This document shows, piece after piece, positions 1,478 through 64,000 of a stretch of 64,000 nt of DNA. Under the pieces are notes generated by a model. That model saw nothing but the letters and a program-made list of their open reading frames with translations. It ran no database searches and was not told where the DNA came from. Both the position numbers and the translations under genes were made by a program. The first letter of the stretch is position 1. Each line of letters starts with the position of its first letter. The stretch spans positions 310,001 to 374,000 of the forward strand of contig JALMLS010000353.1 of the NCBI GenBank assembly GCA_038496445.1, given 5' to 3'. Source of the DNA: Trichosphaerium sp. ATCC 40318. Taxonomy: Eukaryota > Protista > Tubulinea.

Positions 1478-4023
1478 ATGAATACATTTATGCTCGCTTT
1501 AACGTTTTTGGTCGCTTTTGTATGGATTGGGAGCTGTTGCGCTTATGATCCTTCAATTCAACCCCAATGGAAAATATATGGCCAAGGCATGTACTGCGTG
1601 CGTCGGGTTTTACTTACACATGTTTTTAGGGCCTATTCTGGAACTTGTTAACAAATTCCGCTTATTTAACGTACTTTAACCTAAAAATGATAATTTAGCT
1701 AAATTTAACCTCGTACGCAGGATTCGAAGACATTTGTAGATTTACCCATGACAGGTACATGAGATGGAGCATACTTTCTTTCTTACAAAGAACAAGCGCC
1801 TCCTGCAACTATATTGGAGGCTTTTGAAGCCCTTGGTCCTAATATAACCAAGGTATTAAGCAGAATTGTACCATGAAATGTTAACGAACTTTTTACTAGC
1901 CTCATCTTGAAGCTTTCATAGCTCAATACTTTGGCAATGCTGGATCGGATCTTGTTCCTTGGACACCATCTGATTGGATACAAAATCCCGAATTCCTTGA
2001 TGACGTACATGACGCAAATGTACGCAAAGGCGATTGTTCTTTTTCTGTTAAAGTTGTTTAAAGTGCAAGAAGTTTGGGTCTGATATAAACGAGTTGTGGA
2101 AAGTTCTTGGCAGGAGAGTATCTGATAATGTTATAGAGAACCCTTCTTGGTATAGTTTATTACCTCTAAAGCATCCCTTTATTGTACCAGGTGGTAGGTT
2201 TCGCGAGTTTTACTACGTGCGTGATTTCAACTTAGTACAAAAATTAAAGAAAAAAATTAGTGGGACACATATTGGATTGTTAGAGGTCTCCTTGTATCTG
2301 ATATGACGGATACAGTAAAGTCAATTATCCTCAATTTTATTTCTATGGTAAATAATTATGGCTTTATCCCTAATGGTAGTAGAATCTACTACTTGAATAG
2401 GTACCATCCAACTCTTTATTTTTACGTTTTTTTCATTGACAGGTTTTTACTCTAGGAGTCAGCCTCCTGTATTGTCAATGATTGTAAGAGCATACTTAGA
2501 TGTCAGTGGTGATGAAGATATACTCGATGTAGCAATACCTGCTTTAGAGAGGGAGTATGCCTTTTGGATGTCATCTAAGCGTCTGGTTGAGATGCCGCAA
2601 GGTGGTGCTCTGAATAGGTTTTATGTTGAACTTGATTATCCAAGACCAGAGTCCTTCCGTGAAGATACAGAAATTGGTCAGTTAGAGTGGGTTTTTAACA
2701 CTATTGACTTGATACTTTAGTTGCTAATTTGAAACAAAACCAAAAGATTAAGCTTTGGAGCAATCTCGCAACAGCTGCTGAAACTGGTTGGGTACGCTAT
2801 TTGTTTGATTGTATACACTAAGTTAAACTCACTGCAGGATTTCAGTACAAGGTGGTTTGGTGGCAATGACTTAGCATCAACGAATACAACAAATGTTATT
2901 CAGGTTGACTTAAGTACGTATCCTACAAGATTAGAATATTAATGCTATAAGATGTGTTTATGCACAAGATGGAGCAAAATATAGCGTACTTATACAGTCG
3001 CCAAAACAAACCAGCGAATGAAAAAATCTATCTTGACAAAGCACATCAGCGTTGTGAAGCGATCACACGCTATCTATGGGCACGTGACTATCACGTGATT
3101 TCAAAAAAAAAAACCACCTTCGCACTGCTTGTGTAACAATCATTCTAGAACCCTGAGAAGAAACAATGGTTTGATTGGTTTGTGGGGACAGCTGAAAAGA
3201 GGTAGAGTTCCCAATACCCACTTTGTTTTCTAAACTAATGCGGTTATGTTTGTAGCAACAAAGTTTATCCCTCTAATTTCTTCCCTCTTTGGAGTGGTTG
3301 CTTTAACAAGGCACAAAGCGATGAACTGACAAACGCTCTAATTAAGTCAAATTTACTTCAACCGGGTGGTGTACCTGCATCTCTTGTCGATTCTGGACAG
3401 CAATGGGATAGGTTAGTGTTCAATATATTTTTTTGATCTTCTTTATACTTTTGTTTCGCCTTGTTTCTGTTTGTCTTGTGTTACTGTTTTTGTCAAACTT
3501 ATTGCTTGTAGTCCAAACGCATGGGCACCATTACAGCATATCATAGTAGAAAGTCTTGAAGCTTTAAAAACCGAAACATCCATTCAGCTTGCTAAAGAAC
3601 TAGCACAACGTTGGATAAATTCTAATTATATTGCATTTAAACGTGACGGATACATGCACGAAAAATACAACTCAAAAGAACCTGGCAAAGCAGGCACAGG
3701 TAACTTGTTTTTTTTCTCTTTTTTTTTTTTGTTTGTTTTTCAGCCCTACTCCACATGCTCATGTTTATGTACTTGTTGGTTGTTACCCTCTTTTTTTGTT
3801 ATTATGAACTATCTACAATCTTTATGATATTGAAAGTCTACATACAGACGAGATAGTTCACGTAGAAGTGTAGTCATTTGCAACAAGTTTTCTCATGTTT
3901 TTTTTTCATGTTTGTGTAGGCGGAGAATACACACCACAAGTTGGATTTGGATGGACTAATGGGTTAGCGCTTACATTCTTGAAGGAATACGGATCTCTAT
4001 TGAAGTGTTTTGTGCCACAGTAA
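1478..4023 (+). CDS. Secreted alpha,alpha-trehalase (GH37), multi-exon
   Basis: N-terminal hydrophobic signal peptide. Motifs DSKTFVD, PFIVPGGRFREFYYWD, GFIPNGSRIYYLNRSQPP, PRPESFRED, AAETGWDFSTRW, QQWDSPNAWAPLQ, MHEKYN, GGEYTPQVGFGWTNG. Confidence 0.96.
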
Positions 4024-4599
4024 TAAAATTTGTATGTACCTTTGGGTCCTTGTACGTCATTGCCACGCGTGGACAAATCATTTTAACGCAAGTCATCACA
4101 GCTTCGTTCCAATCTACAGAACAAGCATAAGTTATCTAGTTGCTTACACCGTCATACTCATCTGTTTTTTTTCAAAACGTGCGAAACCTTCATTATTAGC
4201 ATTGGTGCGCGTAGGCGTTTCTCTCTGTCACTAATTTGTTTGTTAATAAAAAGTACTTTCATCTCGATATTTCTAACACTCTTTCATTAGATAGCATTTA
4301 GCGTTTTTTACGCACTCACATAACAACCCAGCAAGATTTTACCAACTTTTCGCTGATGCCAATCAACAGCAATAGCCAATATGTTTGAGACGCTAACTTT
4401 CCTATGTTCCTTGCTAAAACCACAATATTTTTGAGTACCAGAGTAAACTGCTTTTAAGGCAACACCCTGGCTTCAATATCAAGTCCTACAGTGCAGGCGG
4501 GGGAAGTAACGGTTTGCATTAGATAGGCATTAGTTACTAAATAGTAGTAAGTTCTGAGAAAACAGGCACTAGACCATGATCCTGGGCGACAGGCATGGA

Positions 4600-4749
4600 C
4601 AAAGTCCTATTAATGTGTGCAGGATAAAAGAAATCCAGCACAAATAGGCAAAGTCCTATAATGTGCAGGATAAAAGAAATCCAGCACATATAGGCAAAGT
4701 CCTAATAATGCGCAGGATAAAAGAAATCCAGCACATATTGTAGGCAAAG
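4600..4749. repeat. Tandem array of three 46-50 bp hairpin-forming units
   Basis: Unit caaagtccta-x-(g/c)gcaggataaaagaaatccagcaca-x-tagg occurs three times (49, 46 and 50 bp). Each unit is an internal inverted repeat. A partial extra copy (caagtcctacagtgcagg) lies at about 4480. Confidence 0.9.
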
Positions 4750-5433: not shown

Positions 5434-6507
5434 ATGACCTCCTATTATATAAAAGAAGATAATAACGCTCCAAACACAAAAAGACATCCACATGACCCAA
5501 ACGTTTTACCAAACGAAACGAACCTATTCTCTTTACCTTTTGAAGTAATTTGCGTTATACTAAATGTTCTCAATGAAGACCCAGATCGTCTCTCTTCCGC
5601 ACAGAGCTGTAAACTACTTTATAAGGCTATTCATAAAGATGTTGGTTATATAAAAATATTCGTACGAAAACAAGAGGACGCAGAAAAGATTACAGAGCAC
5701 GTGGGTATTTTACGTCATACTGAAATTATAATAGAAAAAAAATGTAATCTACGTCTTTTTAAAGGCGTCAAAGACATCAATGTCAAAAAAATATCAAGTC
5801 ACGTGACAGATGATAGTATTATATCACTTGCCGGCGTAAGATCGATAAATCTAAACAAATGCAAAAGAATCACAAATAGAGGTTTAACGGCGCTAGCTGG
5901 AGTTCATACTATAAAACTACGCGATTGTAAACACGTTGGAGATGACGGTATAAAAGCTCTAGCAGGAGTACATACGATCGACTTGCGATGTACCTACGTG
6001 ACAGACAAGGGTATAATACCATTATCTGGCGTACATCAGATCGATCTATACGGATGCGACAGTATAACAGACAAAGGAGTAAAAGCGCTAAAAGGAGTAC
6101 ATACGATAAATCTAGGGGAATGTAGTCAAGTCACCGATGACGGGATTAAAGCGCTATCAGGCGTTTACAGCATTGATCTTACTTCTAATACTAATGTAAC
6201 GGACTACGGCATTATGGCTCTATCAGGTGTTCATACAATGACGTTGAGCGGTTGCGGAAGAGTTACGGATAGAGGTATAAAAGCATTAAAAGGAGTTCAT
6301 ACTATTTTCTTGTCTGATTCTCAGGTGACCGATGAAGGATTGAAAGCTCTTGCTGGTATTCATACAATATACTTGGATGGGTGTAATCGTATTACCGATG
6401 AAGGAGTAAAAGCATTAAAAGGCGTTCATCAAATCGCTTTGAATGGATGCCGAAATATCACTGAATACGGACTTAAGGCGCTCGTTGGTGCTTATATAAG
6501 TAACTGA
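5434..6507 (+). CDS. Intronless F-box-like + leucine-rich repeat protein
   Basis: F-box-like LFSLPFEVICVILNVL...SCKLLY, followed by about 10 repeats of roughly 22 aa, LxGVHTIxLxxCxxVTDxGxxAL (Cys-containing LRR). Confidence 0.88.
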   Translation: MTSYYIKEDNNAPNTKRHPHDPNVLPNETNLFSLPFEVICVILNVLNEDPDRLSSAQSCKLLYKAIHKDVGYIKIFVRKQEDAEKITEHVGILRHTEIIIEKKCNLRLFKGVKDINVKKISSHVTDDSIISLAGVRSINLNKCKRITNRGLTALAGVHTIKLRDCKHVGDDGIKALAGVHTIDLRCTYVTDKGIIPLSGVHQIDLYGCDSITDKGVKALKGVHTINLGECSQVTDDGIKALSGVYSIDLTSNTNVTDYGIMALSGVHTMTLSGCGRVTDRGIKALKGVHTIFLSDSQVTDEGLKALAGIHTIYLDGCNRITDEGVKALKGVHQIALNGCRNITEYGLKALVGAYISN

Positions 6508-16626: not shown

Positions 16627-17463
16627 TTATTCCCAAGGAGCTTTCCATCCGTTTTTCTTCTTTTCCAGATAGTACGTATTAAAAGGATCAGCGCTACATG
16701 AATGGTCTTCAACAATAAAAACACCAATAACTGCCTTTGATATAGGTGATATACAGTGAATGAGGTAACATTGAATCTCTCCATTATCATACTTTAGACA
16801 CGTGAGGTTTTTCAATCCCCACTTTTTTTTCTTCAAAACTTCTTCGAAACTCTTCAACACCTCAGGTTTTTTCACGTGTTCCGAGAACGTTTTTAAATCA
16901 AATTCGCTGAAGCAATCAATATGTTCTTCATAGTCAAACGTAAATCTCTTGAACAGGCTCATTAGTGCGTGGTCTCCCTCGTCATCTTCTTTTAAGGCTA
17001 TGTAGAATGGAGTGAAAATTGGTACATCTGGGGAATTGTAGTAGGCGAATTCAAAGCCATCTAGGTGAGTAGCGAGCGAGGTAGCTATCTTCTGGTTATC
17101 ACATCTTTCCTTCCAACAGTCTACATCGCCTTCCACAATCCAAACCTCTCCGTAAAGTCCTTCAGCACGTATGTCGTAGTCACCAGTCGCTGCTACTTCG
17201 AGAACTTCTTTGTATCCGAGAATGTCAGAAGCTTTGAAATATTCCCAAATGCCGTTGTTGTGAATGTAACCCTCATCGGTGATTGTGGCGTACAGAGAGA
17301 TGTACTTTTGTCTCCAATACGGTACACGTGATTTGATAAACTTTTCGTAGCACTTCGATACCGTCAAGTACGTATAAAGAGATGCCTTGTCAGTGTTGTA
17401 CTCCATGATCACCATTACAATCTCTTTAGGGAGTTTTTTGTTTAAGGCTGTTGTGTTGTCCAT
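16627..17463 (-). CDS. Intronless protein with F-box-like N-terminus and unknown C-terminal domain
   Basis: 278-aa uninterrupted ORF. KKLPKEIVMVIMEY...YLTVSKCY...YWRQKY resembles an F-box. Confidence 0.72.
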   Translation of the reverse strand: MDNTTALNKKLPKEIVMVIMEYNTDKASLYTYLTVSKCYEKFIKSRVPYWRQKYISLYATITDEGYIHNNGIWEYFKASDILGYKEVLEVAATGDYDIRAEGLYGEVWIVEGDVDCWKERCDNQKIATSLATHLDGFEFAYYNSPDVPIFTPFYIALKEDDEGDHALMSLFKRFTFDYEEHIDCFSEFDLKTFSEHVKKPEVLKSFEEVLKKKKWGLKNLTCLKYDNGEIQCYLIHCISPISKAVIGVFIVEDHSCSADPFNTYYLEKKKNGWKAPWE

Positions 17464-18460
17464 TGATACTCTTTGCTAATTTATGGTTTTAAGTCGTTGT
17501 ATTTATTAAGTTCTAGAGGCACGCGCTCGAAGCGTGCCACTTGGAATTAACAGATAAACTTGAACGAGCGTTTGTGAAGTATAGTTTAGGAACATAGTTT
17601 GTGTAACACAAACGATGTTTTCTTGGCAGTATTTGTACTGGAAAATAAACTATTGGGTTAATAGGCTCACTAGATATGAGGCTTTGTCATAGTTGTTATG
17701 AAAGTTTTTTGTTATGAACAGTTTTAACTTGGACTGGGTCTTGTCACAAAAGATCGTCTCGCTGTTCTTAATTTGATTGAACAAGGACATAGTCTAATGC
17801 GTTTGGTAGGGTTAGAATTACACTTATAACACAGGATGTTGCCATTTTCAGCCACAGCGAACTTTTTATCCCAAACTAATGAAACCCAAGCTAGCCATAT
17901 CAATGACTTACAAAATAATATCTCATAAAGCGTTCCTTTGTGTACGTGTTGATGGGCTTGCTTCAAAACCGCAGGTAAACTAGGTGTTAATATTTGTACA
18001 AGTTGTATTTTACTATGGCATCCTACGGAGACCAATACATTTTTCTCATGATTGTAAAAAAACCTATCAAAAGTAACAAAAAGGTGGAGAACGTTGGACA
18101 TGCTGAGAAATCTGCACAAGGTTGTTTTTTTTCTATCCTTTCTTAAAAAGGTAATTGTCGCCTTATTTGTTTAAATTAAATTCCTTAAACTTTCTGCTTA
18201 GCCAACGATGTTGTTGGTCTTAAAGGTGAAATTAACAATTATACAGTACGCTGGTACTAAACAAGTGACTTATAAGAATCCTTACCGACGGCGTAGATAA
18301 AGGACCTAGAGCAACGTACAAATATAAATCAGTCAATCAATAAAAATAATCAATAAATGATACTGCTTCATTTACATGGAATACCGAGAGCAACTTGTGA
18401 TACTGCAATAACGTATTGAAGGCAAACTTGTACTGTACAATTTATTTTATTCTGGAGCAA

Positions 18461-19290
18461 TCAATTGAGAGGCTTCATAGGTATGAATACAATTTTTTCA
18501 AATGGTTGGCTTCTTTGAACTTCTGGCATGCGCCAAAACTTACTAGCGTTTTGTATCCGTTCCCACGGATTTAATGTTTTGTTTGTATTGCTTTTCATTT
18601 CTCTTCTTCGACTCTTTGATGCCGAAGTATGTATCACTGACCCATACCGAGAAGTAAATTGTTTAAAATCACGTGCCAACAGTGTATTACTATACGTCAT
18701 CAAACGTTTTTTGTGTTGTTGACCTCTTCTTTGTTGTTGCCTTTGTGTTTTTTGCCTCTTTACAATTTTACCGTTCTTATACTCCGGATATTGTTTGTAG
18801 CATACTCCAAGGTCTTTGCTCATAGGTAAGGCTAGTCTTTGAGGAAGCCATAAAGGGTTCGCCTTAATTGGAGGTAGTCTTAAAAAATGAGATTAGAATC
18901 AATTTAAAACTTAAAAAAGTGCTTTTAGTTTTAACCCAAGGCTCTACAAGCGTCGGAAAGGCGTAATACACCTTCCTTACGCGCAATACATTGTTGGGGG
19001 GTATTAATTCTGGCTAGAATAAGCAATAAACGATCCCGAAGGAATGTTTTTACCGATCTCGCTTTCAAAGAGTTAGCTTCGTACCTTTCAGTCATTACAC
19101 AAGGTAATGTATATCTATCTTCTTGAGGATCTTTTTTTGCCATGCGTTGAAGTAGAATAAGAGAATCTGCAGCGACTGTTTGTCTCGTATCAGGTTCGGC
19201 GCAAGCAGAGGTAACATTTGCCCTGTTGCTTAAAATATCACGTGGTAAACGCGGTAAAATACACGTAGTAGTATTTCCGGTGTTTATCAT
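18461..19290 (-). CDS. Orphan family paralog A (2 exons, basic protein of about 220 aa)
   Basis: Exon 1 MINTGN...VAADSLILLQRMAK. Exon 2 LPPIKANPLWLPQRL...QYPEYKNGKIVKRQ...NPWERIQNASKFWRMP. Highly similar to 32567-33428 and related to 28055-29015. Confidence 0.8.
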
Positions 19291-20399
19291 TATTAGATTG
19301 TTTGAGTGTTGTTGCGACGGTGGAGTGATACAGTGTGAATGGCCGCATTGTACGTAATCTCGGAATTTGTTTTTATTTCGTTTTTTTTTTCTTTCGACAA
19401 ACGTTTGTAGCCCTACATTTTACAACAATACGTTTTATTACAGAAAGGTTCTCGGGATAGTTCCCGAGAGTCTATTGAATAAGATTTATCTTCCGACAAA
19501 ACTCGCTAAAACGAAAAAAAAGCGTTTTAATTTAAATCTGCGAGAAATAAAAGTTGAAAAAATAGCCACACAAATACTATTTCCCTTTGGATTCTGTGAC
19601 GTCATCAAAGGATTATATCTGTACCGAGATAGCCGAATTGTAAATCATCAAAACGCCTACGAGCCATTCGTAATATTGTTACGAACATAGTAGGTTTCAG
19701 TCACCCAAGCACGGGATAGTGTTAATCGTGAAAACAGTCAGCGTTCGGGCGGAGTTTTACTTATTACTGCACATTGCCTCATGCTAATCCACACATAAAT
19801 ACAGGATATAGTAATGTACAACAAAATGAATGTATCTAAAACATCAATATGGTTGTAACACGTTTTGTGTTTCACGTGATTGTTTTTAAAAACAAAAATC
19901 CAATTTGTACAAAAAAAAAAGGAAACAAAAATGATCAAATGTACTTTGTTTGTGTGGCCTCACCGTCTAATATTAGCTCCTGGTTTACTAAACATTTTAT
20001 AGTCACCGTGGTATGGTGGCACTGGCAAGAAAGCCTTCATGCAAAAAAAAAAAACCCAAAAAACTTTTTTGCTGTTGTGTATTGCTAACAGGTAACGATA
20101 AATTTCGTTGAGATTAAATGTACAACTATGTTAGCTCCATCTGGTTTCTATTTTAGCGCACGAAGAAGACTTGATACCAAAATAGAAACTGTCATTTTGA
20201 AAAAATGTGCGTAAAAAATCGGAGTTTGAAGAGATTTACCTCTGATATTTTGGGTGTTCTTACACAATATCATCGCAAAAGTCCATACCTATAGGAGCAA
20301 GAAAAAAAATACACTGGTTTATAAAGCGGAGCTTGAGTTATACAAGGTGACATTCTGGTATAATGGCGTTATATTGCTCTGAACGATAGCGCATACATC

Positions 20400-21480: not shown

Positions 21481-21661
21481 AGGCTTCATTCAGTTGTGCT
21501 TTTATTCTGCAAGTCCTAGTGTAAGTTTTTTTACCTACAAGACATCTTAAATTGATTTATTACTTCGTTGTTTTGCATACGTGAAAAAATCACGTGAAAT
21601 ACACGTGTTATTCGTTGACATATTAAATTACTATATGGGAACAGTCAAACGGTTTATTATA

Positions 21662-27300: not shown

Positions 27301-28054
27301 TGCCATAAACGCAATTGTATGTCGTTAGATAAAAACGAAACAAACTAAGAACTGCGATGATAATAATCGCGCCAGGAATCGTAAAAAGAAACTACGTAAC
27401 ACGTAATGTGAACTGTAAGCAAGTTCGCTTGATGTTATTTCGGCAACGTGATGTTTTGTACGTTGCAGATGTAATGTCAAATAAAAAACGGAGTTAAACC
27501 TGTAAATAATTTGATGTACATAAGCTAACAATGCAACCAACGCGCATTATGATCAATACAATCAAATGGCATACTTTTTGTGGTTGGAATGGTCTTGGCT
27601 TTATAACATGGAGATATTTCGAAAAAACTGTAATGTGCAACCAAAAAAATGTCAGATAAAAAAAAACCCCAAACGTCAAGTATCCTAAAAAAACGTAATG
27701 CTTTTTTTTTTAATATCACAAATACTGCGCTTGCAAACGTGAAAGTAAACCATTTGTGAAAAGGCGATCTTTTTTTGTGTGCGTTTTTTCGCACCTCAAA
27801 AACAAGCCCTACAAATTGCATAAAAAACCATTCTATTACGGCTCGTTTTTTTTTGTTCAGTGTTTGGACTCTATGCTATTTTAATTTTAACCCAAAAAGA
27901 ATTATTATTACGAACCCCTATGCATCTATTTCAATCACAGCAGTTGAGAACAACAGTCCGTTGTTTCTTTGTGTTACAAACGTACTACTTGCCACAACCT
28001 TTTAAATGCCACCAAAATGTGAAAACTTTCAACAAACAGAAATTTCAAAGCATC

Positions 28055-29015: not shown

Positions 29016-29420
29016 AGAAAACTAAATAAAACAGTGCTTCGAGGCACGCTTGTACATACGTACTGTCTGAGTTTAGTGGTGTATCTTTTCCTCTTGATAT
29101 TTATTTGTAATTTTGAAGGTCCTGCCGGTGTACCTAACTGCCTAATCGGTCATTTTTCTATTTTACGAGACTGTATAAATATTGGAGGACGTGTGATGAT
29201 TTTTTTTTGTGTGAAAAAAAAAGAAGTTGTAGGCGTGGTTTATGTCATTGACGCCACCAAGCGCAAATCTAAACTGAGTGAATGCAAAAAAACGGTGAAG
29301 AGCTAGCAAAAAAATATGATTATAACAATTACAATAATTATGAATAGCACTAAAGGAGCATCTTGATAGAAGTACATGTAGTTTATTTTAATCTTGTTTT
29401 TTTTTTTTTCCTTTTGGGCT

Positions 29421-32383: not shown

Positions 32384-32566
32384 GGTAGTAGATGATGTTA
32401 TTTAGAGCATAAAACGAGGGACGCATGAAATATTTTCACAAAAATTCTTGCGCCTTAAAGTCCTTTCACTTCAACGTTTAATGACGTACTGGTAGTCAAA
32501 AAGAACACGTAATGGAAACCATGTACTACAGCGGTATACAAATTTACATAATATTTATTCGGAGTA

Positions 32567-40090: not shown

Positions 40091-40789
40091 CTATGACAAA
40101 ATACAGCTACTTTCATTTTTAGTATTCTTTTTGACTCTAATTTCTTGGGTGCAATAACTCCATTGAAGATACTCTTCTTTTTCTTCTCCATGGAAATATG
40201 AATGTAGCTCAAAGGCTTCACCATTCCTAAACCATAACCCAAAATCTCCATGAAGTTTACCTTCTACATAATGGCATTGTTTAGTTAATTGACCATTATC
40301 AAGCCACTCCTTAAAATCGCCTTCACGCTTGCCCTCCTTATATAAACACGTAGAACGAACTTTACCATTTCGGTGGTAGGAAATAGAATTTCCTTCTAGT
40401 TTGTCGTTAATTAAATGGCAATGAATTTCCTTTCGGCCATTATTATACCAGCACTTGAATTCTCCTTCAATTTTATCATTAACACAGTGATAAAACTCAC
40501 GTAATATTCCGTGGCTATACCAGCTTTTGAACTCACCATGACGTTGGCCATGGTTAAAACATTCTTGACATGCAAGTTTTGAACTCCTCTTACCAAAAAC
40601 GTTATATGTTTTTCTTTGCAGCCACGTGCCTTGTTTCTTTAGCTCATCGTCAAACCTTGTTGTGGTAGCAGTCTGTTTTGAAAGTATTGGCCAAATAACA
40701 TACACTTCAGAGTCTAAATCGATAATATCAAGTTGTAGCTCCAACGGAAGGTGTAGTAGAAGGCACCGATCAGCTAGCGGACTATTCAT
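40091..40789 (-). CDS. Intronless F-box-like + MORN-variant (YwqK-like) repeat protein
   Basis: LLHLPLELQLDII N-terminus, then about five 24-aa repeats xGEFKxWYxNGxxxxxCxYxxGKxE. Confidence 0.85.
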   Translation of the reverse strand: MNSPLADRCLLLHLPLELQLDIIDLDSEVYVIWPILSKQTATTTRFDDELKKQGTWLQRKTYNVFGKRSSKLACQECFNHGQRHGEFKSWYSHGILREFYHCVNDKIEGEFKCWYNNGRKEIHCHLINDKLEGNSISYHRNGKVRSTCLYKEGKREGDFKEWLDNGQLTKQCHYVEGKLHGDFGLWFRNGEAFELHSYFHGEEKEEYLQWSYCTQEIRVKKNTKNESSCILS

Positions 40790-45288: not shown

Positions 45289-48200
45289 ATGGACGTCTAT
45301 GTGACTACAGCTGCAGTGGGCGTTATCACCGTAGGTTGTGTAGTTGTATACTACTTTTCGCGTAGTAAAAATCCGTACAGAGGCTTAGGTGGTACGTGAA
45401 CGCCACTTTAAACTCAAGAAAAGCCTATAACATCACTAGCTGTTAGAAAGAATAAGTTGCTTTCAAAATTCGCTGGCGAGGGCAGTCCTACGCAGCTTAG
45501 GCTGTTATTGAGCGTTCCGAAAGGTATTAACGTGAACAGACGGTATTTCAGAGGTAATTTTAACTTGCGATATGTACAATCAGTTTATAACGCGTGAAAA
45601 GGCCCAGCCCTATGCTCTGCGACTAGATTCGGGCATTTCGAATGTGTCAAAATTCTGGTAGATTTTGGAGCAGGTAAGTTGTTACTCCAACGAGCTTAGC
45701 GACCTCAAAGAGCTGTTTAATGCATTATCTTGATATCTAACGGCTCATTTCGTAGATATTGACATGCCGGACATGAGAGGTGATACACCTCTCATATGTG
45801 CTGCCAGAGGAGGACGTGCAGATATTGCAGCTTATATCATTAAAAAAACAGGCCCACAGAAGGTGCACGAGAAAGGTGAGTTATAATTTTGGTAAACCCA
45901 TTTAAAAGTGACTTCTCGGTAGGCTGGAAAGGGTACTGATTTACCATAAGGACTAGTAATAGTGTGTTAATTTTAAAAAGGTTAACGGCTCTTCATTGGG
46001 GTGCTCTAAATGGTAGAGATGAAGTGTGCACGTGTAAGTTGCTACAACAATATTTTTGTATTTTGTTAACGTTTGGTGCTTTAGTACTGTTGAAGCATGG
46101 CGCTCATGTTAATAGCCTGACCAATGCTCTGGAGACACCATTACATTTTGCATCAGGTAGTGGTCACGTTCACGTCATAGAAATATTATTAAAACAACCT
46201 GGTGTCCTACTTAATGAACAAGATAAAAATGGTATTTTTTAGGTTTTGGTTCTCTTCTCTGCTTACGCTGTACAAGGTTTAACGCCTCTCCATTGGTCAG
46301 CTCGGCGATATGGAAATCTTGGTCTTTCACTTATTGATGCTGGAGCTGATGTTTCTATACAATCAAATGAAGGTCTAACAGCTTTTCAAGTTGCTTGTAC
46401 GCTTAATGTTATTTTTGGATGTATTCTTACCTTTGTTAGGCTTGCGTGGAAACACAGAACATGTCACCGCAGTAAAAGATAAAGAAAAGGCAGACTACAT
46501 AAAAACTATAGTCTCTATGATACCAGCACGTGATATTCCAAGTATTTATTGCTAATGAGATGCTTTGTTTTAGGGAAACGAAACGCATGAAATAGAACAT
46601 TTGAGAAGAGTCTTAGAGCATCTTTGCACAAATGACAATGAAGACTGCAACAAAACTTTGAAACTCCTCGCGTCAAATATAGCTACTCTTGGTTGCACAC
46701 TCTTAAAAACGGTACGTGCCAGTTATCACTCTAGTTACCACGTGGTGCTAAGTTTGTATTTTATAGAAAGAAGGAGATGAGTCAAGTGCATTTAAACGAT
46801 TAGTTCATACTTTCGTAAATGTAATACTTACTGTTAGAAGCAAAACAGGTGTTGATATTTTTTACTAGTTTTAGGTTTCTAATATCTTATGTAGAAACTG
46901 CACCTTGTATTGAAAAGTCTATGACTATTATTTCAGACCTATGGGATGCGTTGGAGACTAAACTTGAGACAACCGAAAAAGCATTATCTGAAGAACCGAG
47001 TATGTAACAGAGTCTTTATGTTGGTCTTGTAACTTTCTTTTCAGATGATGAAGCAAAATCTGTGATGCTAGATACCGCGTTCATACATGCGAGGTATATT
47101 ATAGAGGCTTATTCAAGTATAACGAAGGTATCAAGTGGAGAAGATAAACGAAGGTATTCTTATTTTTTTTACCACGTGTTTTATACTCACATTGGTTAGG
47201 TTCTTGAACTTTGTTAAAGATAGAGCATCTTTATTTCAAGCATTAATAAGTGACGATGTTCTATTATTAACAGGTCCTTTTGAGTTCGTTCTACAAGTAA
47301 GTGGAACTGTTAGTTTATTTTGATTGTTTCTGGTTTTTACTAATTGTTATTTTTTCTTGTTAAGACATTAGATGGTGGAGTCCTACCAGACTCGATTGTA
47401 AAGCTTTTAGATTTATTAACATTTGACCAAAAGCGATCTTGGCTGTTACGCAAAGTACACGAAGATGCATCTGAGGTAACACTTACTAAGACAGTAATGT
47501 TTAGTAATTTACTAAAAAAAATTTAAGGGCAAGTACGAAGGAGTTAATATTCTTGTAAATCGATCTGGCGGCATTCTACAAAACAGTTGTGGTTCAATAA
47601 TGTCAAATGATGCTCGAAACTTAAAGGGTAAACTATGGGTTAAGTTTGAAGGAGAAGAAGGAGTAGGTATGGAAAACCGGAGTTACAATATGAACAAACT
47701 GATTTCTTTACAGGCAGAGGAGTGCTTCGTGAATGGTTCTCTTTACTTAGTCAAGAGATGTTCGATCCAAACAATGCTTTATTCAAGCTCTGTCAAGATG
47801 GTGTAACGTTTCAGTTTAACCCTCAGTCTCACGTGAATGCAGACCACCTTTCATACTTTCGGTACAAGGAAACTGTTTACAATTCTGTATGTCTGACCTT
47901 GTTTTTAGGTTTATAGGCCGAGTCATTGGCATGGCTATCTACCACGGAGAGTATTTATCAGTTCACTTTACACGAAGCGTTTATAAGCATATGCTTGGAA
48001 GAAGAGTCCTGTTGGAAGACTTAGAAGTAGTTGACACAACTTATTATACAAATCTATCGTACGTTATTACTGGTTTAGTTTGTTGTGGTTTGTTTTTTGT
48101 TCTTGCTATTTATCACGTGACATTTTGTTGTTCAATATTCTTATGATTCTTTTAGAGGGATGAGAAAATATAATATTGATGATGCTGATTTGGGTCTGAC

Positions 48201-49082
48201 ATTTAGTATACAAGATAATACCTTTGACAAACCTACAAGTGTTCCTCTCAAGAAAAATGGAGAAGAAATTGATGTTACTGAAAAAAATAAGGCACGTGTT
48301 CTTTAAACTTTGTGACTAGTCTATGTGGTTATATGCTAATATTATGTCTTTATTAGGAAGAGTATATGCAGCTTGTTACAGAATACTTGCTTTTTAAAGG
48401 AGTTGAAAAACAACTCGAAGCCTTTTTGAGTGGTTTTTATGATGTTATTCCAATGTACTATGTAAGGCTCTTTAATGAATACGAGTTAGAACTTTTGATA
48501 TCAGGTACGAAACATATTAAACTATTTTATTCGATAGCCATCTGCGTATACTAATAGCTTATAAAGGGCTGCCTAGCATTGATATCGAAGATTGGAAAAA
48601 AAATTCAAAATATGTTGATTGCAAAGAAGATTCAGAAGTTGTACAGGTAAGTGTGATTTTCTGGTTCTGTATGATTAATCATAGCTCTTATTTTTTATTA
48701 TAGTGGTTTTGGAAATATGTGCATTCTTCAAATAAACGAGAGCAAGGTAACTAAGAAATCGTAATTTAATCTTTTATTTCTGAAACTTTTTTTAGCTTCG
48801 TTGCTTCAATTCGTGACTGGAAGTGCGTGTGTACCTCTAGGAGGATTTAAATGCTTGAGCGGTCCCTCTGGGACTTCTAAGTTTACTATCAAATGTACAG
48901 GAAGTCCTGAATCCCTTCCATCCGCTTCAACATGGTACACAAAAAAATTAAAAGTTCCAAAAAAGCTGATAGTTTTCTTTAGTTTTAACCTCGTTCGTAT
49001 ACCTAATTACACAGACGAAAAGACATTAGTTGAAAAGTTTAATATGGCCATTGGTTTAGGTAAATCATTTGCTTTTAACTAA
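45289..49082 (+). CDS. Ankyrin-repeat HECT E3 ubiquitin ligase (HACE1-like architecture), multi-exon
   Basis: N-terminal hydrophobic stretch; ankyrins GDTPLICAA, TALHWGA, ETPLHFAS, LTPLHWSA; HECT LWVKFEGEEGV, LREWFSLLSQEMFDPNNALF, LLQFVTGS, LPSASTCFN (catalytic Cys split by an intron), SFAFN*. Confidence 0.95.
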
Positions 49083-49819
49083 AACGAGCACGTGACGGCA
49101 ATGTAAAAAAATAAAAAGTTGTAGCAGTAGTTTCGAGTACTGAAATGACAAGTCATTACCTTTGATCACGAAGTATGTATGCCATTTCACCTAGTGTTCA
49201 TGGTAAAGTTGTTTCAGGCTCTTTACTGCAAAACAGAGTGTACAAGCAACTCAGGAGCGTTAAGCAAAACTGGTACTGCTCAATTTTTACAAATTCATCC
49301 GCATGTTAGGAGCTCACGTAGATCAAGTGATGCGGTACGGTAATTGTCTGGAAGTCACTTATATACACAAACAGCGTGTGTTGAATTGGTCCTTGCTCTG
49401 AGCACGGCGGTTGACCAGCTGAAGCAACAATACCTTCTGTAGCGTCTCTTATTAACGAAGGGTCTACTACCACGACTTTGCTCACCTACCATTTTTTTCG
49501 CACACTATTAAGCACTTGATGCATTAATGTCACTCATACCCATGCTACTCTACTTTATCCAAGTAAGGAGGAAGAATATGTTGGTTGTCGGAGCGTACCT
49601 TACAACTTGTTTTGTATGAACAGAACTGAACTCGAAATACTCAAGTGGGCAGTAACTCAGGCATATGATTTTACAAACTATGGCTCGAAAAGTTAGTGGA
49701 GAAACTTTACGTATTTTTGACAAAGGCTGCTTTCTCAAATCTTGATTTATACACCTATTTACGCTTTCAAGTAGCTCCTACTTTGCATTGAAGGATAGAT
49801 AATGTTGGTTTAAGATTTA

Positions 49820-51290
49820 CGCCACGTGCACGTTTTGTTAGGCGTATTCAATGTTTGTTACAAATACTGACAGTTGCTAGGTATGTTTGTTCTTGGTAAT
49901 TTAGTTTGATTGCCCTCATCTGTGTAATCAAATTCACTACACATCAACACTCTATAAAACAAGCAAGGTCTTGCGCTACGAGCAAAGAAATTGTACAAGT
50001 GCAAATGTTGGTGGTCAGTTTCTTTTGATTATGCTGTATGCCACCTACAACTCTTTAGTTAATCACGTGTAGATGCAACGCCGTTGGTTTTGAGTTAGTA
50101 TCTCCGCCGCGTTTATTTATATTTACCCGACGCGAACAGAGGGGATGTTATCGGCGCTTATTGCCAATAATCGCTTTCGCCTAATTTCCGACAAGTTTCC
50201 GGCAAAAAGATAGCCCCAATAGTGCCCCCATTGTGTCCGTACCTCATCCGAAAATAAATGTCACTGAAAGGCATTCAAAGCCCACCACACTTCCCAAAAT
50301 ATCTATTGGCAATACGATAATGTAATTGCTCTCGAGATGGTTTACGAATCCAAACTCAATCAGATATTCTGTAGTTTACCAAAAATTAAACGAAGCCATT
50401 TTTATAAACTGCACGTAGATTCACGTGAAACGTGTGAATCGGCACGTGATTTTTATTGCTCTAGAACGATACTAGATGAGTGTTAAAGCCATTACCGAGC
50501 GAATCTGGTTTTTGGTTTAAGAGAAAAAAAGTAAAACACGTTTTTCACTATTTTCTTCGTCCGCTTGTTTTGAACAACGCTCATACCTTTGGGACTACTC
50601 TACCGCGAAACAAAAATACCCAAAAAAACCAAAAGGTACACAGCGAGCGCCTAAAAAAGGTTTTTTGACGACTCCCTTGTGACGTCATCTGAAGCAGTGA
50701 GCAAGGTTCATTTCTAGTTGGGTATATTTAAACCAAAGTGTCCACTATGGTTTCGGGTATTGGCTCGTTGCAGCTAGCGGAAAGTATCTCCTTCCGGAAA
50801 AGTAATAGAAACGCGTGCAGAACATGCTTTCTTCGCGTAGTTATGGGCAAAAACGCAAAAGTTCGCAGTGTGAATCCGGCCGCAAAAAAATTGCCGACAT
50901 TTGCGGGCGGTGCATCCAAATTATAGAAAACGGTGTATTTTTGCGTACAGAGTGCGTCGTTTGGTTCTTAAAAAAACACGTGATGTTGTGGTGTTTTTTC
51001 GTTTTCTTTGTTGTCACGTCACGTGTTTATTATTACGTGTTTGGTTTCTATGGTTTTACCTTGTTGTGGTCGGAGTTATGTTGCTAAAAACGCTGGAAGC
51101 TCAGCCAAGAACTTGTCGCAGGAAAAATATTAAGCAGTTAAATAAATGATAGCGACATTAGTGAAGTTCTTCTGCTTTTAAAGCTTAAGAAGCGAGAGTT
51201 TGCCCAAAAGAGAATGTATACAAAGAACGTGTTGTAGAGATCACATGTCACATTTTTTTCAACACAAGTCTGCCTGCACGTGATTTTGAA
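49820..51290. promoter_or_regulatory. E-box (CACGTG) cluster and CRE-like TGACGTCA upstream of the bHLH gene
   Basis: CACGTG at about 49823, 50064, 50422, 50443, 50977, 51020 and 51276; TGACGTCA at about 50680. Function is inferred. Confidence 0.45.
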
Positions 51291-51358
51291 TTCTTCAAAC
51301 GTTAACAAATATAAAACACCACAAGCAAGAACAAACTTCAGTCGTAGTTGTCTTAAAA

Positions 51359-52412
51359 ATGATGTTATCACCAGAATACACTAAGAGTCATCATATCAAA
51401 CTTCCTGCCTGTGATAGCATCAAACCCCAGTTTGTAGTCCCTGACTTCAGACGTAATCAAATGAACTTACACGTACGTGTTTACAGTAAACAATTATTGT
51501 TCTCAAACATTTTCTCACTGACCTTAGCAACCACAACGTTCTCCGTTATACACTCATGCACGTGTTAAAAGGCAGTTTCAACACACTCCAGCTTATCCCA
51601 CGAAACCGCTCCGTTATCACCACCCAGCACCTGTTCAAATTCAGGTGAAAACGTGTGCAGGCACGTTTTTTTTTAGTTGAACTTATTTTTAGCGAAATTT
51701 ATTTGAACGTATTTTAACCAATAAATAGAAAGTCCACCTGTTCTTTTGCCTAGACGTGTACTTGATAGTGAACCAAAGACTTACAGACCCAAACTAACAC
51801 TTCCACCAATACGAGGCACGTCATCAAAGCGAAAAAAAACCCAAAGAATAAAAGATCTTTTTACCTTTTTTGCAAGAATTAACATTCACTTTAGCACCTT
51901 CGTTCAAGAGGAAGCATGTCAACACTGTGAAGAAAGAGAGACATAGAATAATAGAAAAGAACAGAAGAAATGACATAAACAAGTTGATTGAGCAACTCAG
52001 AGATGCTATTGCAATGAGAGGCCCTGGTACGTATACAACAAAAAAACAAAGAACAATCTGCGCCCTTTTTTTTTCAAATCACGCAATACCTCGTTATGCA
52101 CCGTGAAAAATCGTAAGAAATTCTGTAACCTTTTCGTGTATTTTTGGTATGTATCATCACATAGCACGTGCTCAACAAAAATATTCACGTTTTTTACTTG
52201 AGATTATGTGTTCGTTGTATCTAATCTTTTTTTTCTTGTTAGGTCGTGTAACAAAAGTAGAAGTACTTCAAAAAGCTGTTGAATACGTCGAAAATATAAA
52301 CTCTTTTGCAAGACTTGTTCAAACAAAATACACAAAACCACAGACGCTATCTATTGCAGAGACATCGTTAACAAAGAGGATATACCGTGCCATAGAAACA
52401 GAAGAGGATTAA
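51359..52412 (+). CDS. Class-B (Myc/Max/USF/Cbf1-type) bHLH transcription factor, multi-exon
   Basis: KERHRIIEKNRRNDINKLIEQLRDAI-loop-RVTKVEVLQKAVEYV; the basic region has the H5-E9-R13 signature. Confidence 0.9.
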
Positions 52413-57089: not shown

Positions 57090-58135
57090 CTGTTTGGTTT
57101 CTTGTACTTCGCTACTACCAAGTGCAGATAGGTAAATGAGCAGTTCTCATCTCTTATTCACTCGTCGCTGTGATTTAAAGTTGTAAAAAGGGAGAGAAAT
57201 AACAACGATCACCACCAAAACAATAAGAACAATCACAATCGCAACAGCAATCAATCCATATTTTAATCCATTGTTATCACCCTCATCTTCACCACCACAA
57301 GGTTTCGAAGTATAGATAACGTATATCTTACGTAGCTCTAAGGTGCTTTAGCTATGTGGTGTGATGAGCGTGATGTACCAGTTTTATCAAGTGATGATTC
57401 AATACATTGATTTTGTTCAAACTCAACACTCAATCCTGTCACATGACTGTGATGAGATATCTGTATTCGAGAGTAACCACCGTTTTGTTTCAATGGTGAT
57501 GTACTTTCAGGAGGTTTTATATTGATGGATGCGTTTGGAAAATCAGCACAACCCAAAACAGTGATGTTTGTAAAGTAGTCAAGCAACAATGCATTCCCAT
57601 TCTCCCAATTTAGATCGCCTTTGACAAAAACTTTTCATACAAATATGACTTTTTGCAGTTACATATGACTCACTTTTAATTGTAGCGGATATGTTACCAA
57701 TAGAATGACGTCCCTATCAACTGTATAATCGCCATGAACCGTACAACTGGTATTATCACTTATAATCGCAGAAGGGTTTATTAAATCAAACGCTTCTTTC
57801 ACTACTCCTGTCCGTTTTCTACAACAACAATTCGTCCTTGTTCATCAAATGTAGTTAGTATAACTGTATCTCTTGAGCTATTGGTACCAAGTTGGCGTAT
57901 GACTGTCTTTAAGCATAATTAAGCAAACTGGTGACTTTTCAACAAATGTCTTTTTACAACAAAAAAGAATTTGTGTTTGCCATTTTTTTTCAACTAAGTA
58001 CGAACTCTCGTAGCTGTCAAGTAAGAAATACTCACTTCGGTGATATGTTTGAAGAGCTAGACCAAAATTAGAAGGTATGCTAGGGATCGTAGTATTGTCA
58101 ATTATTGTATCAAAATCCACTAAATGGTGTTCTGA
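57090..58135 (-). pseudogene. Decayed tandem partial duplicate of the 3' half of 58201-60435
   Basis: Near-identical blocks (LLDYFTNITVLGCAD, VEFEQNQC.ESSLDKTG, EDEGDNNGLKYGLIAVAIVI) with deletions and frameshifts; no 5' exons. Confidence 0.85.
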
Positions 58136-58200
58136 GTGACGTTTTCGTTTTATTTTCTGCTTTTTTTAAGTGTGTATAACAGTAACTGTGACAATCCTTC

Positions 58201-60435
58201 TCATGTTTGGTTTGCTCTTCGCTTTGATTTGAAGTTATGAAAAGGGAAGATGACTTCTGGTTTCCACAGAGAAATAACAACGATCACCACCAAAACAATA
58301 AGAATAATCACAATCGCAACAGCAATCAATCCATATTTTAATCCATTGTTATCACCCTCATCTTCACTTCCACCACAAGGTTTCGAAGTATAGATAACGT
58401 ATATCTTACGTAGCTCTATTAAAAGGATATGAGAACACAGCGTTTTTGTTAATACGGCACAGTGTGCACCTGTTTTGTCGAGTGATGATTCAACACATTG
58501 ATTTTGTTCAAACTCAACATTCAATCCTGTCGAGTTGATATCACATGACTGTGATGAGATAATCTGTATTCGAGAGGGCCCATCGGTTTGTACAGAAGAG
58601 GCAATAGTTTCAGGAGGGTTGATAGTGATTGAAGCGTTTGTTAAATCAGCACAACCCAAAACAGTGATGTTTGTAAAGTAGTCAAGCAACAATACATTCC
58701 CATTCTTCCAATTTAGATTCCCTATTGAATAACAAACTCAAAATGTAGTTTCTTACAAGACTCACCTTCTATTATAACGGATATGTTACCGCCAAAACTA
58801 ACGTCTCTATCAACTGTATAATCTCCGTTAATTATACATACACGATTGTTACACGTGATGACAGAAGGATTAATTTCAGGTAGGGGTGATAAATCTTCGT
58901 TCACTACCTCTACTGTTCTGTTTGCTATAACAACAATACGCCCTTCTTCATCAAACGTTGCTACCACAACTGTGTTGTTTATGATGGGAGAAAGTTGCGT
59001 GTAAGTACCTTAGATAATGGTGCTTAGCAACACAATTGTTTGAGATAAGTACCATTTGTATAAACTATGTATGCAATTTCGTAGCCGTCAAGTAAGAAAT
59101 AGTCATTTCCAGGATAAGTATGAAGACCTTGGCCATATTGATTATATTCACTAGGCAGCGTAGTATTGCCAGTGATCGTATTAAACTCCACTTAAAAGCC
59201 TGTTAGAAAAGAGGTACAACTTGTTGATTGATGATTCTTACTGAAGTCAAAATAGAATAGAGTTTCGCCACCAGCAACTATCACGACATCTGGTCGAAGA
59301 AAAGCAACGCCCTAAGTACATTACAATTTAGGTCATAATTCAAAGCATAAAACTAGTACTTGTGGTGTAGCTTTATTGTAGTCCGCGCCAATATCGTATG
59401 TACCAACATGTGAACCTAACTAAAGTCAGATTTAATCTTTTTAATAAGAAGATGTACTATCAGAAATTTTATATTGAAAGACTCCCTTATTAAACACTGC
59501 CACAAGAATATATGTGTCACTCGGATCTATAACTATTTGCCTTTCTTGAAGCATTGAAGGCTTAAGAGTGAGGGATCGTTTGTATTCAAGAGAAGACGAA
59601 TCAAACACAACCTTTAAAAAAAAGTTACTTTCATGTATAGTAGAGTTTGTAATTAGTTTCAATAATCGGTTTAACACCTCTATAACACCTGCTCTTATAG
59701 TGCACGAGTGTGAGAATTAAACCCCGAAATTCACGTGTAGCAATAAGTGCGGAAGAACAGTATCAATTTTTTTTTTGACTTTCTTACAATTTCTTCTGTA
59801 TTTTGTCCTGCCGTTACGTATACATCAGATTTATTGTTATTTATAGTAAGACCTATAACTCTAAGAAGGAAACAGGATTGAGGAGATGTAAATAACTTAC
59901 CTTGAGGGTGGGAACCTCCAAAAGAACTTTGAGTTATTCCATTACTCCATCCAGATTTTTCCTCAACAATTTTACCTAGCAAAGAAATTGACAATTGCGT
60001 GCTATGTGGAACCAACAGTAAAAAAAAAAAGTACCTTCTAAGTCGAATACAAGAAGTTTGTTTTCTACGGTCACCAAAATAAAATTCTGAGTAACTAATA
60101 CGCTTTGTGTGTCTCCTTCTCCTGACACGTCGAAGCTAGTAGAAGCTACAAAAACAATAAATTAAAGTTCAAGGTACGGATGTTATCCTTGAAGGGAAGA
60201 TACACTAATAAAGAGAGTGACGCTTTGAGCTTACATAATAAATGATCACAAAATAGAATAAAAAGGATATCTGCTTACAAAGAAAGCAGAAGAAGAGCAC
60301 GTGCTGTGTAAGCAAGATGTAGACTTTGTAAGCAAAAAAAAGTTCCGCACGTGATATCTGAGCGTCAATAATAATAACTACGCATTGAATTAAACATAAA
60401 ACTAGCAACATGCCAGGTAGTAGCGTTGTTGCCAT
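58201..60435 (-). CDS. Type-I single-pass membrane protein, possibly with a beta-propeller-like N-terminal ectodomain, multi-exon
   Basis: Signal peptide MLLVLCLIQCVVIIIDAQ; beta-rich repeats (HPQGLTINNNKSDVYVT, IVIDPSDTYILVA); TM YGLIAVAIVIILIVLVVIVVISLW; basic tail. Confidence 0.75.
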
Positions 60436-60549
60436 GGATAGTCCCGTTTTTACAATTGATTTTCAAAAGAAAGCCCAAAAAGCCTGACTTAGCTGAAGTT
60501 TTCCAAAAACCAAAGATAGTTCGCTTTAAATTGCTTGTAGAAGTTGTTT

Positions 60550-62891: not shown

Positions 62892-63255
62892 ACACCGAAC
62901 CAAAAAAACAAAAACAAGAAAAAAATAACAATAAATCACGTGTTTGTACATAAACCGCTTGGGGTTTTTTTTTTCAACACAGCGGAAGGTGCAGCTCTTT
63001 ATTTTTTGAGGGTGCCCGCGGTTTTAAAATAAAGTTTAAACAAATACACCACATTTTACATGCACCGGAGTTTAGGGGTTGAAACGTTGTGCAAGGTTCA
63101 GTAAATAACAATGTGATTATTCTTAAAAGATCGTTTCGCCAACATACGTAAAACAAGGCCCCACAAGTGGGTTGTATAACAAAATACGCCAATAAGGCAA
63201 CAAAAAAGCAGTAACAACTACACAAAGCGCGTAACAATACACCTAAACTAAGAAA

Positions 63256-64000
63256 ATGGGTGCGTGCCATGGAGGTAGAACAGCTAATCACGTGGCTATA
63301 TCGAAAGCTATCTCTAAAGCTAAAAGAGAGCAAGCAAAGACTATAAGGATATTATTACTAGGTTAGTAGTATTTATACTGTATATATCAAGGGAAGATAA
63401 GAGATTATTGCCCGCGATAACGTGTTAAAACAGAATTTAGTATTTTAGGAAAAAAACAAAAAAAACAAGGTTACATGAGTTTATTTTAATGTTTCTTCTC
63501 TTTATTCTTATTTATAATGCTTATATACACTATATTATAGGTGCTGGGGATAGTGGTAAATCTACATTTCTTAAACAGATGAAATGCGCTCATGATAGAC
63601 TATCTCTTGCTGATTATCAGACGTATAGGAGGATTATTAGGTACTCTTTTTTTGTTTAAAGCGATCAATTTTTCTTCAAGAAGAACTACCCAAAAAACGT
63701 TGATGCACCAAAAGTCCGGCCGTATTTTGTACTAATGTGATATGTAAGAGACAATTTAATTGCTGCAGCAAAGGGACTATATATTGGTGCAAGCCGAGAA
63801 GGTATTGATGTAACAAGTGAAACAATAGTACGTAAAATAACAAACGTTTTTAAACGCTTTATTTTTTGAAAACTCAGCGCAGTTCGGGGAGGTACCACCA
63901 ATTGTCACGTGATTTCAAAAAAAAAAACGATCGTGGACAGTTGACTAATTTTATGACGTGGGTTTTTTTGTTCGTTCTTTGCGCACGTGACATAATTATA
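63256..64000 (+). CDS. Heterotrimeric G-protein alpha subunit, truncated by the window end
   Basis: MGAC N-terminus (myristoylation/palmitoylation-type), TIRILLLGAGDSGKSTFLKQMK, YRRIIRDNLI. Confidence 0.93.

Follow-up and report, generated by a model that had tools for sequence, protein, structure and literature searches.

The stretch of DNA analyzed here, hereafter referred to as the window, comprises 64 kb of contig JALMLS010000353.1 from the protist Trichosphaerium sp. ATCC 40318 (positions 310,001 to 374,000 of the forward strand). It encodes, among other products, an ATP-dependent phosphoenolpyruvate carboxykinase, a trehalase, an ankyrin-HECT protein, and basic helix-loop-helix (bHLH) proteins, the closest protein matches being from marine protist transcriptomes at 42% identity. 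Across its exons, introns, splice donors, and spacers the palindromic hexamer CACGTG is repeated at a density which forms the subject of the present analysis.

Abundance and specificity of the CACGTG palindrome

An exact word search located 78 CACGTG sites between positions 3081 and 63989, corresponding to approximately 1.22 sites per kb (1 per 0.8 kb) and to eight times the dinucleotide expectation, as dinucleotide-preserving shuffles returned a mean of 9.96 sites (standard deviation, 2.9; maximum, 17). An earlier note on this DNA, based on a hand count, had reported at least 70 copies at about 10-fold expectation; this claim is confirmed by the 78 sites observed against approximately 10 by shuffling, and each of the 18 coordinates quoted in that note is present in the site list (18/18). 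At the G+C content of the window (36.65%), a zero-order model predicts 7.2 sites, while Markov models of orders 1, 2, 3, and 4 predict 9.8, 12.5, 18.9, and 40.5 sites, respectively. The excess persists under the order-3 model, in which CACGTG is the top outlier among all hexamers (z = 13.6) with poly-A as its sole near competitor, and also under the maximal-order model (z = 9.0), despite the pentamer counts of the latter being dominated by the hexamer itself.

Enrichment is specific to the complete hexamer: one-mismatch neighbors, in nine classes, occur at 0.74 to 1.33 of expectation without positional pattern, the words CACGTA, CACGTC, and CACGTT together are found 79 times on both strands where approximately 79 are expected, and ACGT outside CACGTG is observed 263 times against 246 expected. 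Other palindromes with an ACGT core are mildly raised (AACGTT, 45 versus 33.6; TACGTA, 32 versus 17; GACGTC, 10 versus 6.9) and are thus not enriched to an equal degree, while CpG is not depleted in the window (observed/expected ratio, 0.97). A compositional artifact is ruled out by these Markov, shuffle, and neighbor-word controls. A search of the literature did not reveal a comparable word excess in a eukaryote, and no CACGTG excess was seen in contigs from unrelated organisms which carry leucine-rich repeat (LRR) homologs.

Flanking sequence and repeat content

In an alignment of all 78 sites, the information content of the flanks is approximately zero beyond ±2 positions, and CACGTG is therefore not a dispersed repeat. 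Within these two positions the folded flanks display A at −2 in 52% of cases (chi-square P = 1e-6) and T at −1 in 49% (P = 3e-7), a preference which is absent from the control words formed by CACGT with A, C, or T. The T at −1 or A at +1 that is characteristic of class-B (CACGTG-type) E-boxes is found on at least one side of 60 of the 78 sites, and a second, overlapping flank class with G at −1 or C at +1 comprises 34 sites, part of it being owed to splice donors. The earlier note had described extended forms of the hexamer as frequent, and this observation holds: TCACGTGA occurs 17 times (0.8 expected), and ATCACGTGAT, a weak extension of CACGTG, 6 times (0.05 expected). The folded flank consensus, ATCACGTG, fits the T-flanked CACGTG sites which are bound by the TFE, USF, and SREBP families. 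It also matches the Cbf1 binding site, published as RTCACRTG (PMC10516642).

That the excess might reflect base composition, or a hidden dispersed repeat such as a miniature inverted-repeat transposable element (MITE), an Introner, or a transposon footprint, is an explanation to which we attach next to no credence. Its sole support is the 24-nucleotide (nt) sequence TCACGTGATTTCAAAAAAAAAAAC, which occurs twice; the excess outlives every background model, the flanks are devoid of signal beyond ±2, and sites lie in frame within conserved coding sequence. A repeat search of the window found no CACGTG-bearing family, and this result, together with the flank logo, rules out a MITE, an Introner, or a transposon footprint; the footprint reading is further rejected because footprints cannot sit in frame in coding DNA. 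The two exact copies of TCACGTGATTTCAAAAAAAAAAAC (3091 to 3114 and 63905 to 63928) lie in unrelated surroundings, and neither this sequence nor the PIAS open reading frame (ORF) of the window had a match in the metagenome contigs.

Distribution across coding and noncoding DNA

The pressure on coding DNA was assessed in a confident set of 6.8 kb, consisting of five intronless ORFs, three of which are supported by Pfam, and the RNA-supported exons of the HECT gene. This set holds 8 CACGTG sites in all three reading frames, i.e., 1.2 per kb, which equals the window average, while synonymous-codon resampling or permutation that kept the proteins unchanged gave a mean of 0.66 to 0.84 sites and exceeded five sites in none of 3,000 runs. 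The presence of CACGTG in coding exons, as asserted in the earlier note, is therefore borne out, and the disparity between observed and expected counts indicates that the pressure is exerted on DNA and prevails over codon choice. The intronless ORFs alone carry six sites in 2.6 kb. Two sites (5698 and 5800; 5698 to 5805, plus strand) encode His-Val in an intronless LRR ORF, three lie in three different frames of the intronless ORF at 16627 to 17463 (16799 to 17330, minus strand), and one is located in a MORN-repeat ORF (40623 to 40628, minus strand).

RNA-derived contigs from three runs, aligned to positions 46000 to 51999 (6 kb), yielded 15 listed junctions. The introns supported in this way, together with long ORFs, served as the training set for a conservative gene finder, which left 35.6 kb of the window unannotated. 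According to the resulting gene models, 18 sites fall in the 19.2 kb of predicted exons and another 18 in the 9.2 kb of predicted introns, against expectations of 2.4 and 1.2, respectively. The unannotated remainder of 35.6 kb accounts for 39 sites, where 6.2 would be expected, and three further sites straddle predicted exon-intron boundaries. The remainder itself includes genes, as exemplified by sites 3081 and 3092, which lie in the trehalase gene. In the 100 to 300 bp upstream of 19 predicted start codons, CACGTG occurs at random expectation; a role as a promoter element is rejected on these grounds, and the view of the earlier note that the excess is not ordinary promoter clustering stands, as coding sequence, introns, and the remainder are all enriched. 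Its estimate that about 30 sites lie in introns is plausible, having been checked in part by the RNA contigs across 6 kb and by gene models elsewhere. The further suggestion that CACGTG constitutes an intronic signal fares less well: the density is indeed highest in introns, and several GC-AG donors contain the word, but introns cannot be the explanation because intronless coding sequence carries a tenfold excess.

The ankyrin-HECT gene illustrates this distribution. Its 17 introns, supported by RNA or read depth, total 930 nt between 46034 and 49082 and wholly enclose five sites (46527, 46739, 47173, 48114, and 48293), or 5.4 per kb, while its exons hold a single site, or approximately 0.5 per kb; a further site, 49089, is located after the stop codon. 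The exonic site (47830 to 47835, plus strand) encodes His-Val in an RNA-supported exon. Site 46739 lies within the intron at 46712 to 46766 (plus strand), which is supported by a joint in run X3 (46710>46767) and by the gene model, and site 48114 lies within a 97-nt GT-AG intron (48059 to 48155, plus strand) whose joint was recovered in four runs. Site 47173 (47173 to 47178, plus strand) falls in a predicted intron of approximately 50 nt, placed at roughly 47154 to 47203 by the gene model and consistent with depth deficits across 47000 to 47399.

Seven sites (49823 to 51282) occupy the 2.2 kb that separate the HECT gene from a bHLH gene, a spacer lying partly beneath unspliced RNA contigs. Such contigs, from two runs, cover 49294 to 50542, a portion of the spacer without a long ORF, and the corresponding transcript could represent a noncoding RNA or an extended untranslated region. 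It is across this same interval that the strains diverge most (approximately 1.6%, with many indels).

Splice donors and GC-AG introns

Introns delineated by RNA are very short (43 to 97 nt; median, approximately 50 nt) and occur about once per 180 bp in the HECT gene (46397 to 48982). Their donor consensus, AG/GTACGT (where the slash denotes the splice site), is unusual, being neither GTAAGT nor GTATGT. Three of the 15 RNA-supported junctions (48292 to 48356, 51661 to 51728, and 51816 to 51894) are of the GC-AG type, a GT-AG placement being impossible in each case, and all three donors read GCACGT, as do those of two introns deduced by other means (46526 to 46573 and 3080 to 3148). Among RNA-supported donors with an ACGT core, GC (four cases) is about as frequent as GT (three cases).

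The overlap between CACGTG and splice donors, which concerns a minority of sites, is supported by an RNA joint for site 48293 and by depth, frame, or homology for sites 46527, 46029, and 3081. Site 48293 forms the GCACGTG donor of a 65-nt GC-AG intron of the HECT gene (48292 to 48356, plus strand), joints for which were obtained in runs X1, X2, and X3. Site 46527 forms the same donor in a 48-nt GC-AG intron of this gene (46526 to 46573, plus strand), which is predicted by the gene model and fits both the in-frame stops that would result from its retention and a depth deficit of approximately 88 nt in the bin 46400 to 46599. The site at 46029 to 46034 (plus strand) straddles an exon-intron junction, CACGT/GTAAGT; splicing of the associated intron (46034 to 46084) restores the ankyrin consensus frame, depth dips in the corresponding bin, and a contig piece begins at 46085. 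In the trehalase gene, the exon at 2969 to 3079 matches positions 316 to 352 of the Pfam Trehalase profile up to its last residue, and the reading frame closes after 3079 and reopens in phase at 3149, which implies a 69-nt GC-AG intron (3080 to 3148, plus strand) whose donor is GCACGTG (site 3081) and which contains a second site at 3092. The gene models include approximately six further GCACGTG donors, in which CACGTG lies at +2 of a predicted GC donor.

These observations raise the question of whether the excess is a by-product of splicing, in the sense that very numerous introns with the donor consensus AG/GTACGT, and GC-AG donors reading GCACGTG, would generate the word. In favor of such an origin are the GCACGT donors of the three RNA-supported GC-AG junctions, the three of eight HECT gene sites which overlap a donor, the trehalase intron, and the six sites at predicted GC donors. 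Against it, at most approximately 10 to 15 of the 78 sites overlap donors, and TACGTG, the word expected of GT donors, which are the commoner type, shows little increase (1.24 of expectation). Furthermore, the T/A flank carried by 60 of the 78 sites is not in itself something that a donor needs, the donor-type flank (G at −1 or C at +1) being found at 34 of the 78, a group which overlaps with the former, while intronless ORFs and the 2.2-kb spacer carry their six and seven sites, respectively. Splicing as the main cause is thus largely refuted, and we consider it very improbable; donor overlap, which perhaps covers 10 to 15 of the 78 sites, represents a real link to splicing rather than the source of the excess. 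A decoy for U1 at the RNA level is likewise rejected, as other NACGTG words pair equally well with U1 yet show no enrichment.

The converse proposition, that pressure toward CACGTG may have turned GTACGTG donors into GCACGTG, is an attractive idea. Among model-predicted donors, G at +7 is present in six of nine GC donors and in two of 12 GT donors; for RNA-supported donors the counts are two of four and two of three, respectively.

Spacing, pairing, and half-sites

The earlier note envisaged a lattice of sites, a regularity which is rejected: the gaps between sites have a coefficient of variation of 0.93, indistinguishable from a Poisson process, with a largest gap of 3.6 kb and a range of 1 to 11 sites per 4 kb. 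The low-density stretches (11.4 to 14.5 kb and 52.5 to 58.8 kb) contain ordinary-looking genes and no recognizable mobile elements.

At short range, full-site pairs at distances of 11, 11, and 12 nt number three, where 0.19 are expected from a Poisson estimate based on the gap list. Two of these pairs are 11 nt apart from start to start with a 5-nt spacer, namely, 3081/3092 in the intron of the trehalase gene (3081 to 3097) and 21591/21602 (21591 to 21607), while the third is 12 nt apart (26323 to 26340); in addition, a pair at 50422 to 50448 is 21 nt apart and encloses an ACGTG half-site. Within 20 nt of full sites, 13 half-sites are present where 4.3 are expected (P = 0.001), and near-copies matching at least five of six positions peak at offsets 11 and 21 (six and four, respectively, versus 0.66 expected). 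Offsets of 11 and 21 nt approximate one and two helical turns and would fit the cooperative binding of proteins to the same face of the helix, a suggestion to which we return below.

Runs of at least seven A or T residues within 30 nt are twice as frequent at CACGTG as at random positions, which probably reflects merely a preference for noncoding DNA. A polar poly-A/T architecture is rejected, as the runs near sites have no polarity.

Gene families, strain variation, and other features of the window

Two sites at 18670 to 19244 (minus strand) are shared at homologous positions with sites 32773 and 33380 of a paralog, as judged by alignment; the paralogs occupy 18.3 to 19.5 kb and 32.4 to 33.65 kb, and the first of the two sites codes within a shared xRDFK peptide. 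These genes belong to a three-member family of unannotated genes without a Pfam match (18300 to 19500, 27750 to 29150, and 32400 to 33650), two members being approximately 75% identical in DNA sequence and the third far more diverged. In a tandem pair at 57.1 to 59.3 kb, site 58852 aligns to CTTATA in the other copy, four of the six letters being different. This tandem duplication of approximately 1.08 kb (57100 to 59300) consists of blocks of 73 to 100% identity, with some segments sharply different, and encodes a predicted single-pass membrane protein (ORF 58201 to 58692, minus strand). The approximately 43 strain differences detected in the RNA contigs include none within CACGTG; they are uninformative on this matter, since only 0.7 would be expected.

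Two further features were noted. Heptads resembling the C-terminal domain of RNA polymerase II (YSPxSPx, with a DNA period of 21 nt) extend across 41072 to 42283 on the minus strand, in an exon downstream of a PIAS/SIZ-like gene. Between 4616 and 4751, in the spacer that lies upstream of the LRR gene, are three tandem units of 43 to 47 nt, each of which holds a short inverted repeat, TGTGCAGGA...TCCAGCACA.

A class-B bHLH-zipper protein as candidate reader

Taken together, the data call for a sequence-specific force which maintains CACGTG by acting on the DNA itself, nearly blind to gene structure, and not on proteins, RNAs, promoters, or mobile repeats. The small bHLH gene at 51359 to 52412 (plus strand; Pfam HLH, 3.3e-7), with three RNA-supported introns, two of them GC-AG, provides a candidate reader of the sites. 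The predicted basic region of its product, ERHRIIEKNRR, aligns weakly with that of Myc (E value, 0.13) and contains the His-Glu-Arg combination that is the signature of class-B proteins, such that a candidate cognate factor for CACGTG is encoded within the window.

We therefore tentatively favor, as quite possible but short of probable, a model in which the sites are read by an abundant class-B bHLH-zipper protein and are retained through selection acting directly on the DNA. Such a protein, of the Cbf1, USF, TFE, or SREBP type, would contact two ATCAC half-sites as a dimer, with ATCACGTGAT as the extended form. Selection for a sufficient number of strong sites would place them where constraint is lowest, i.e., in short introns, untranslated regions, and spacers first, while coding sequence would gain sites through synonymous codon choice; at donors, GTACGTG would become GCACGTG, thereby generating unusually many GC-AG introns. 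We infer the reading by a bHLH protein, the selection for binding, and the effect of that binding alike, and our guess as to the last is that it serves general chromatin or transcription organization as opposed to gene-specific regulation. Support for a protein reader is drawn from the symmetric flanks, which are those expected of class-B bHLH binding, from the helical phasing, from the bHLH gene within the window, and from the paralog pair which has kept both of its sites.

Several observations weigh against such a reader. The even spread across exons, introns, and spacers, the Poisson-like gaps, and the lack of any concentration upstream of genes are unlike any described factor, class-B E-boxes being concentrated in promoters and other regulatory DNA. 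CACATG and CACGTT, weaker variants that bHLH proteins also bind, occur at 0.93 and 0.91 of expectation and are thus without enrichment, and such sharp specificity for a single hexamer is a trait more often associated with enzymes of the modification or restriction type. The phasing, for its part, is only suggestive because it amounts to approximately four independent events.

A possible mutational drive and other possible DNA marks

The main rival explanation, which was also raised in the earlier note and which we regard as doubtful, is a eukaryotic analog of the cyanobacterial highly iterated palindrome (HIP), driven by methylation or repair. In this scheme, a sequence-specific methyltransferase would mark CACGTG, and methyl-dependent or very-short-patch-like repair would bias mismatch correction, such that the motif accumulates as a ratchet, blind to gene structure and lost only at positions where it would violate coding or splicing constraints, its use as a repair signal being optional. 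The compartment-blind, Poisson-like distribution is consistent with such a process, as are the very sharp specificity, the CpG at the center of the palindrome, and the splice donors which appear to have become GCACGTG at the expense of the optimum for splicing. With one site per 0.8 kb, the window also lies close to the saturation of approximately 1 per kb proposed for HIP1 (PMC4390886). Conversely, no methyltransferase gene is present in the 64-kb window, and CpG is at 0.97 of expectation, with the deamination product CATGTG/CACATG (0.93) neither depleted nor raised. A HIP-like process predicts neither symmetric A/T flanks nor phasing at 11 and 21 nt, and the outer-position bias among one-letter deviations that typifies HIP1 is not seen, the neighbors being at expectation. 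Nor, to our knowledge, has a repair drive of this sequence-specific kind been described in a eukaryote, which counts against this explanation.

A more specific version, which we consider somewhat improbable, is that a drive based on methylation and mismatch repair, perhaps through a horizontally acquired pair of C5-methyltransferase and Vsr-like nuclease, pushes near-motifs to CACGTG genome-wide, thus producing the first eukaryotic highly iterated palindrome. Were this the case, synonymous sites would have been rewritten and GTACGTG donors converted to GCACGTG, explaining why approximately one in five introns is of the GC-AG type. A single-path, Vsr-type conversion of CATGTG is not favored, since that word is not depleted, which by an equilibrium argument constitutes only weak evidence.

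The sites could alternatively represent another dense, orientation-free DNA mark with a reader outside the bHLH family, such as a "self" signal that would distinguish host DNA from that of viruses or transposons, of which Chi in bacteria is an example, or a loading site for replication or repair, or one for cohesin or condensin. An even density, a presence in coding DNA by way of synonymous choice, and a strand-symmetric palindrome would all suit such a mark. Nothing in the window is indicative of a system of this kind, however, and the low-density stretches hold ordinary-looking genes; we regard this possibility, too, as rather unlikely.

Comparison with known systems and implications

Among systems described to date, the CACGTG excess most resembles the cyanobacterial highly iterated palindromes. 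HIP1 and the alternate palindromes of cyanobacteria (Elhai 2015, PMC4390886) are, like CACGTG, short GC-containing palindromes present near one per kb and manyfold over expectation, in coding and noncoding DNA and outside any longer repeat, with weak preferred extensions. In contrast to the HIP1 octamer, CACGTG is a hexamer and resides in a eukaryote with spliceosomal introns, where it overlaps donors; the bias of one-letter deviations toward outer positions reported for HIP1 (PMC4390886) is lacking. The origin of HIP1 is itself debated, with selection and a methylation-linked repair ratchet as contenders (PMC4390886).

The class-B E-boxes bound by Cbf1 (at CDEI and in promoters; PMC10516642), USF, TFE/MITF, SREBP, and Myc/Max have a core identical to that of the sites described here, and the T/A flanks, the pairs one helical turn apart, and the His-Glu-Arg bHLH gene in the window extend the likeness. 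Known class-B sites, however, are found in promoters, enhancers, and centromeres and number from a few hundred to a few thousand per genome, whereas CACGTG recurs here at an even 1 per 0.8 kb in exons as well as introns, with no enrichment of degenerate variants.

A particular arrangement of E-boxes, the carbohydrate response element, consists of two E-boxes separated by a 5-nt spacer and is bound by Mondo/ChREBP-Mlx. The two perfect CACGTG-N5-CACGTG pairs (3081/3092 and 21591/21602) and the offset-11 excess of near-copies recall this element, but only a few among the 78 sites form pairs.

In bacteria, CCWGG under the Dcm/Vsr system, Chi, and uptake sequences are overrepresented words made or used by repair or recombination systems. 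These are similarly short and genome-wide and arise irrespective of genes through a process at the level of DNA; in contrast to CACGTG, however, the Dcm/Vsr word is raised less than twofold, while Chi and uptake sequences are asymmetric and strand skewed. We know of no word driven by repair or recombination in this manner in a eukaryotic nucleus. No known eukaryotic system explains the CACGTG excess.

The occurrence of CACGTG at approximately 1.2 sites per kb across exons, introns, donors, and spacers implies that a strong sequence-specific force shapes a eukaryotic genome at the nucleotide level, taking precedence over codon choice and, apparently, over the optimum for splice donors. Should a protein read the sites, an E-box factor would be serving an architectural role throughout the genome, which would be a novel mode of use for such factors. 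Should repair or methylation write them, the mutational drive would be the first with sequence specificity to be described in a eukaryote, and it would allow direct tests of how the HIP sequences of cyanobacteria, whose origin is unresolved, arose. In either case, the GC-AG donors matter for gene prediction in this genome, and the excess has consequences for codon-bias tests and for regulatory inference based on motifs.

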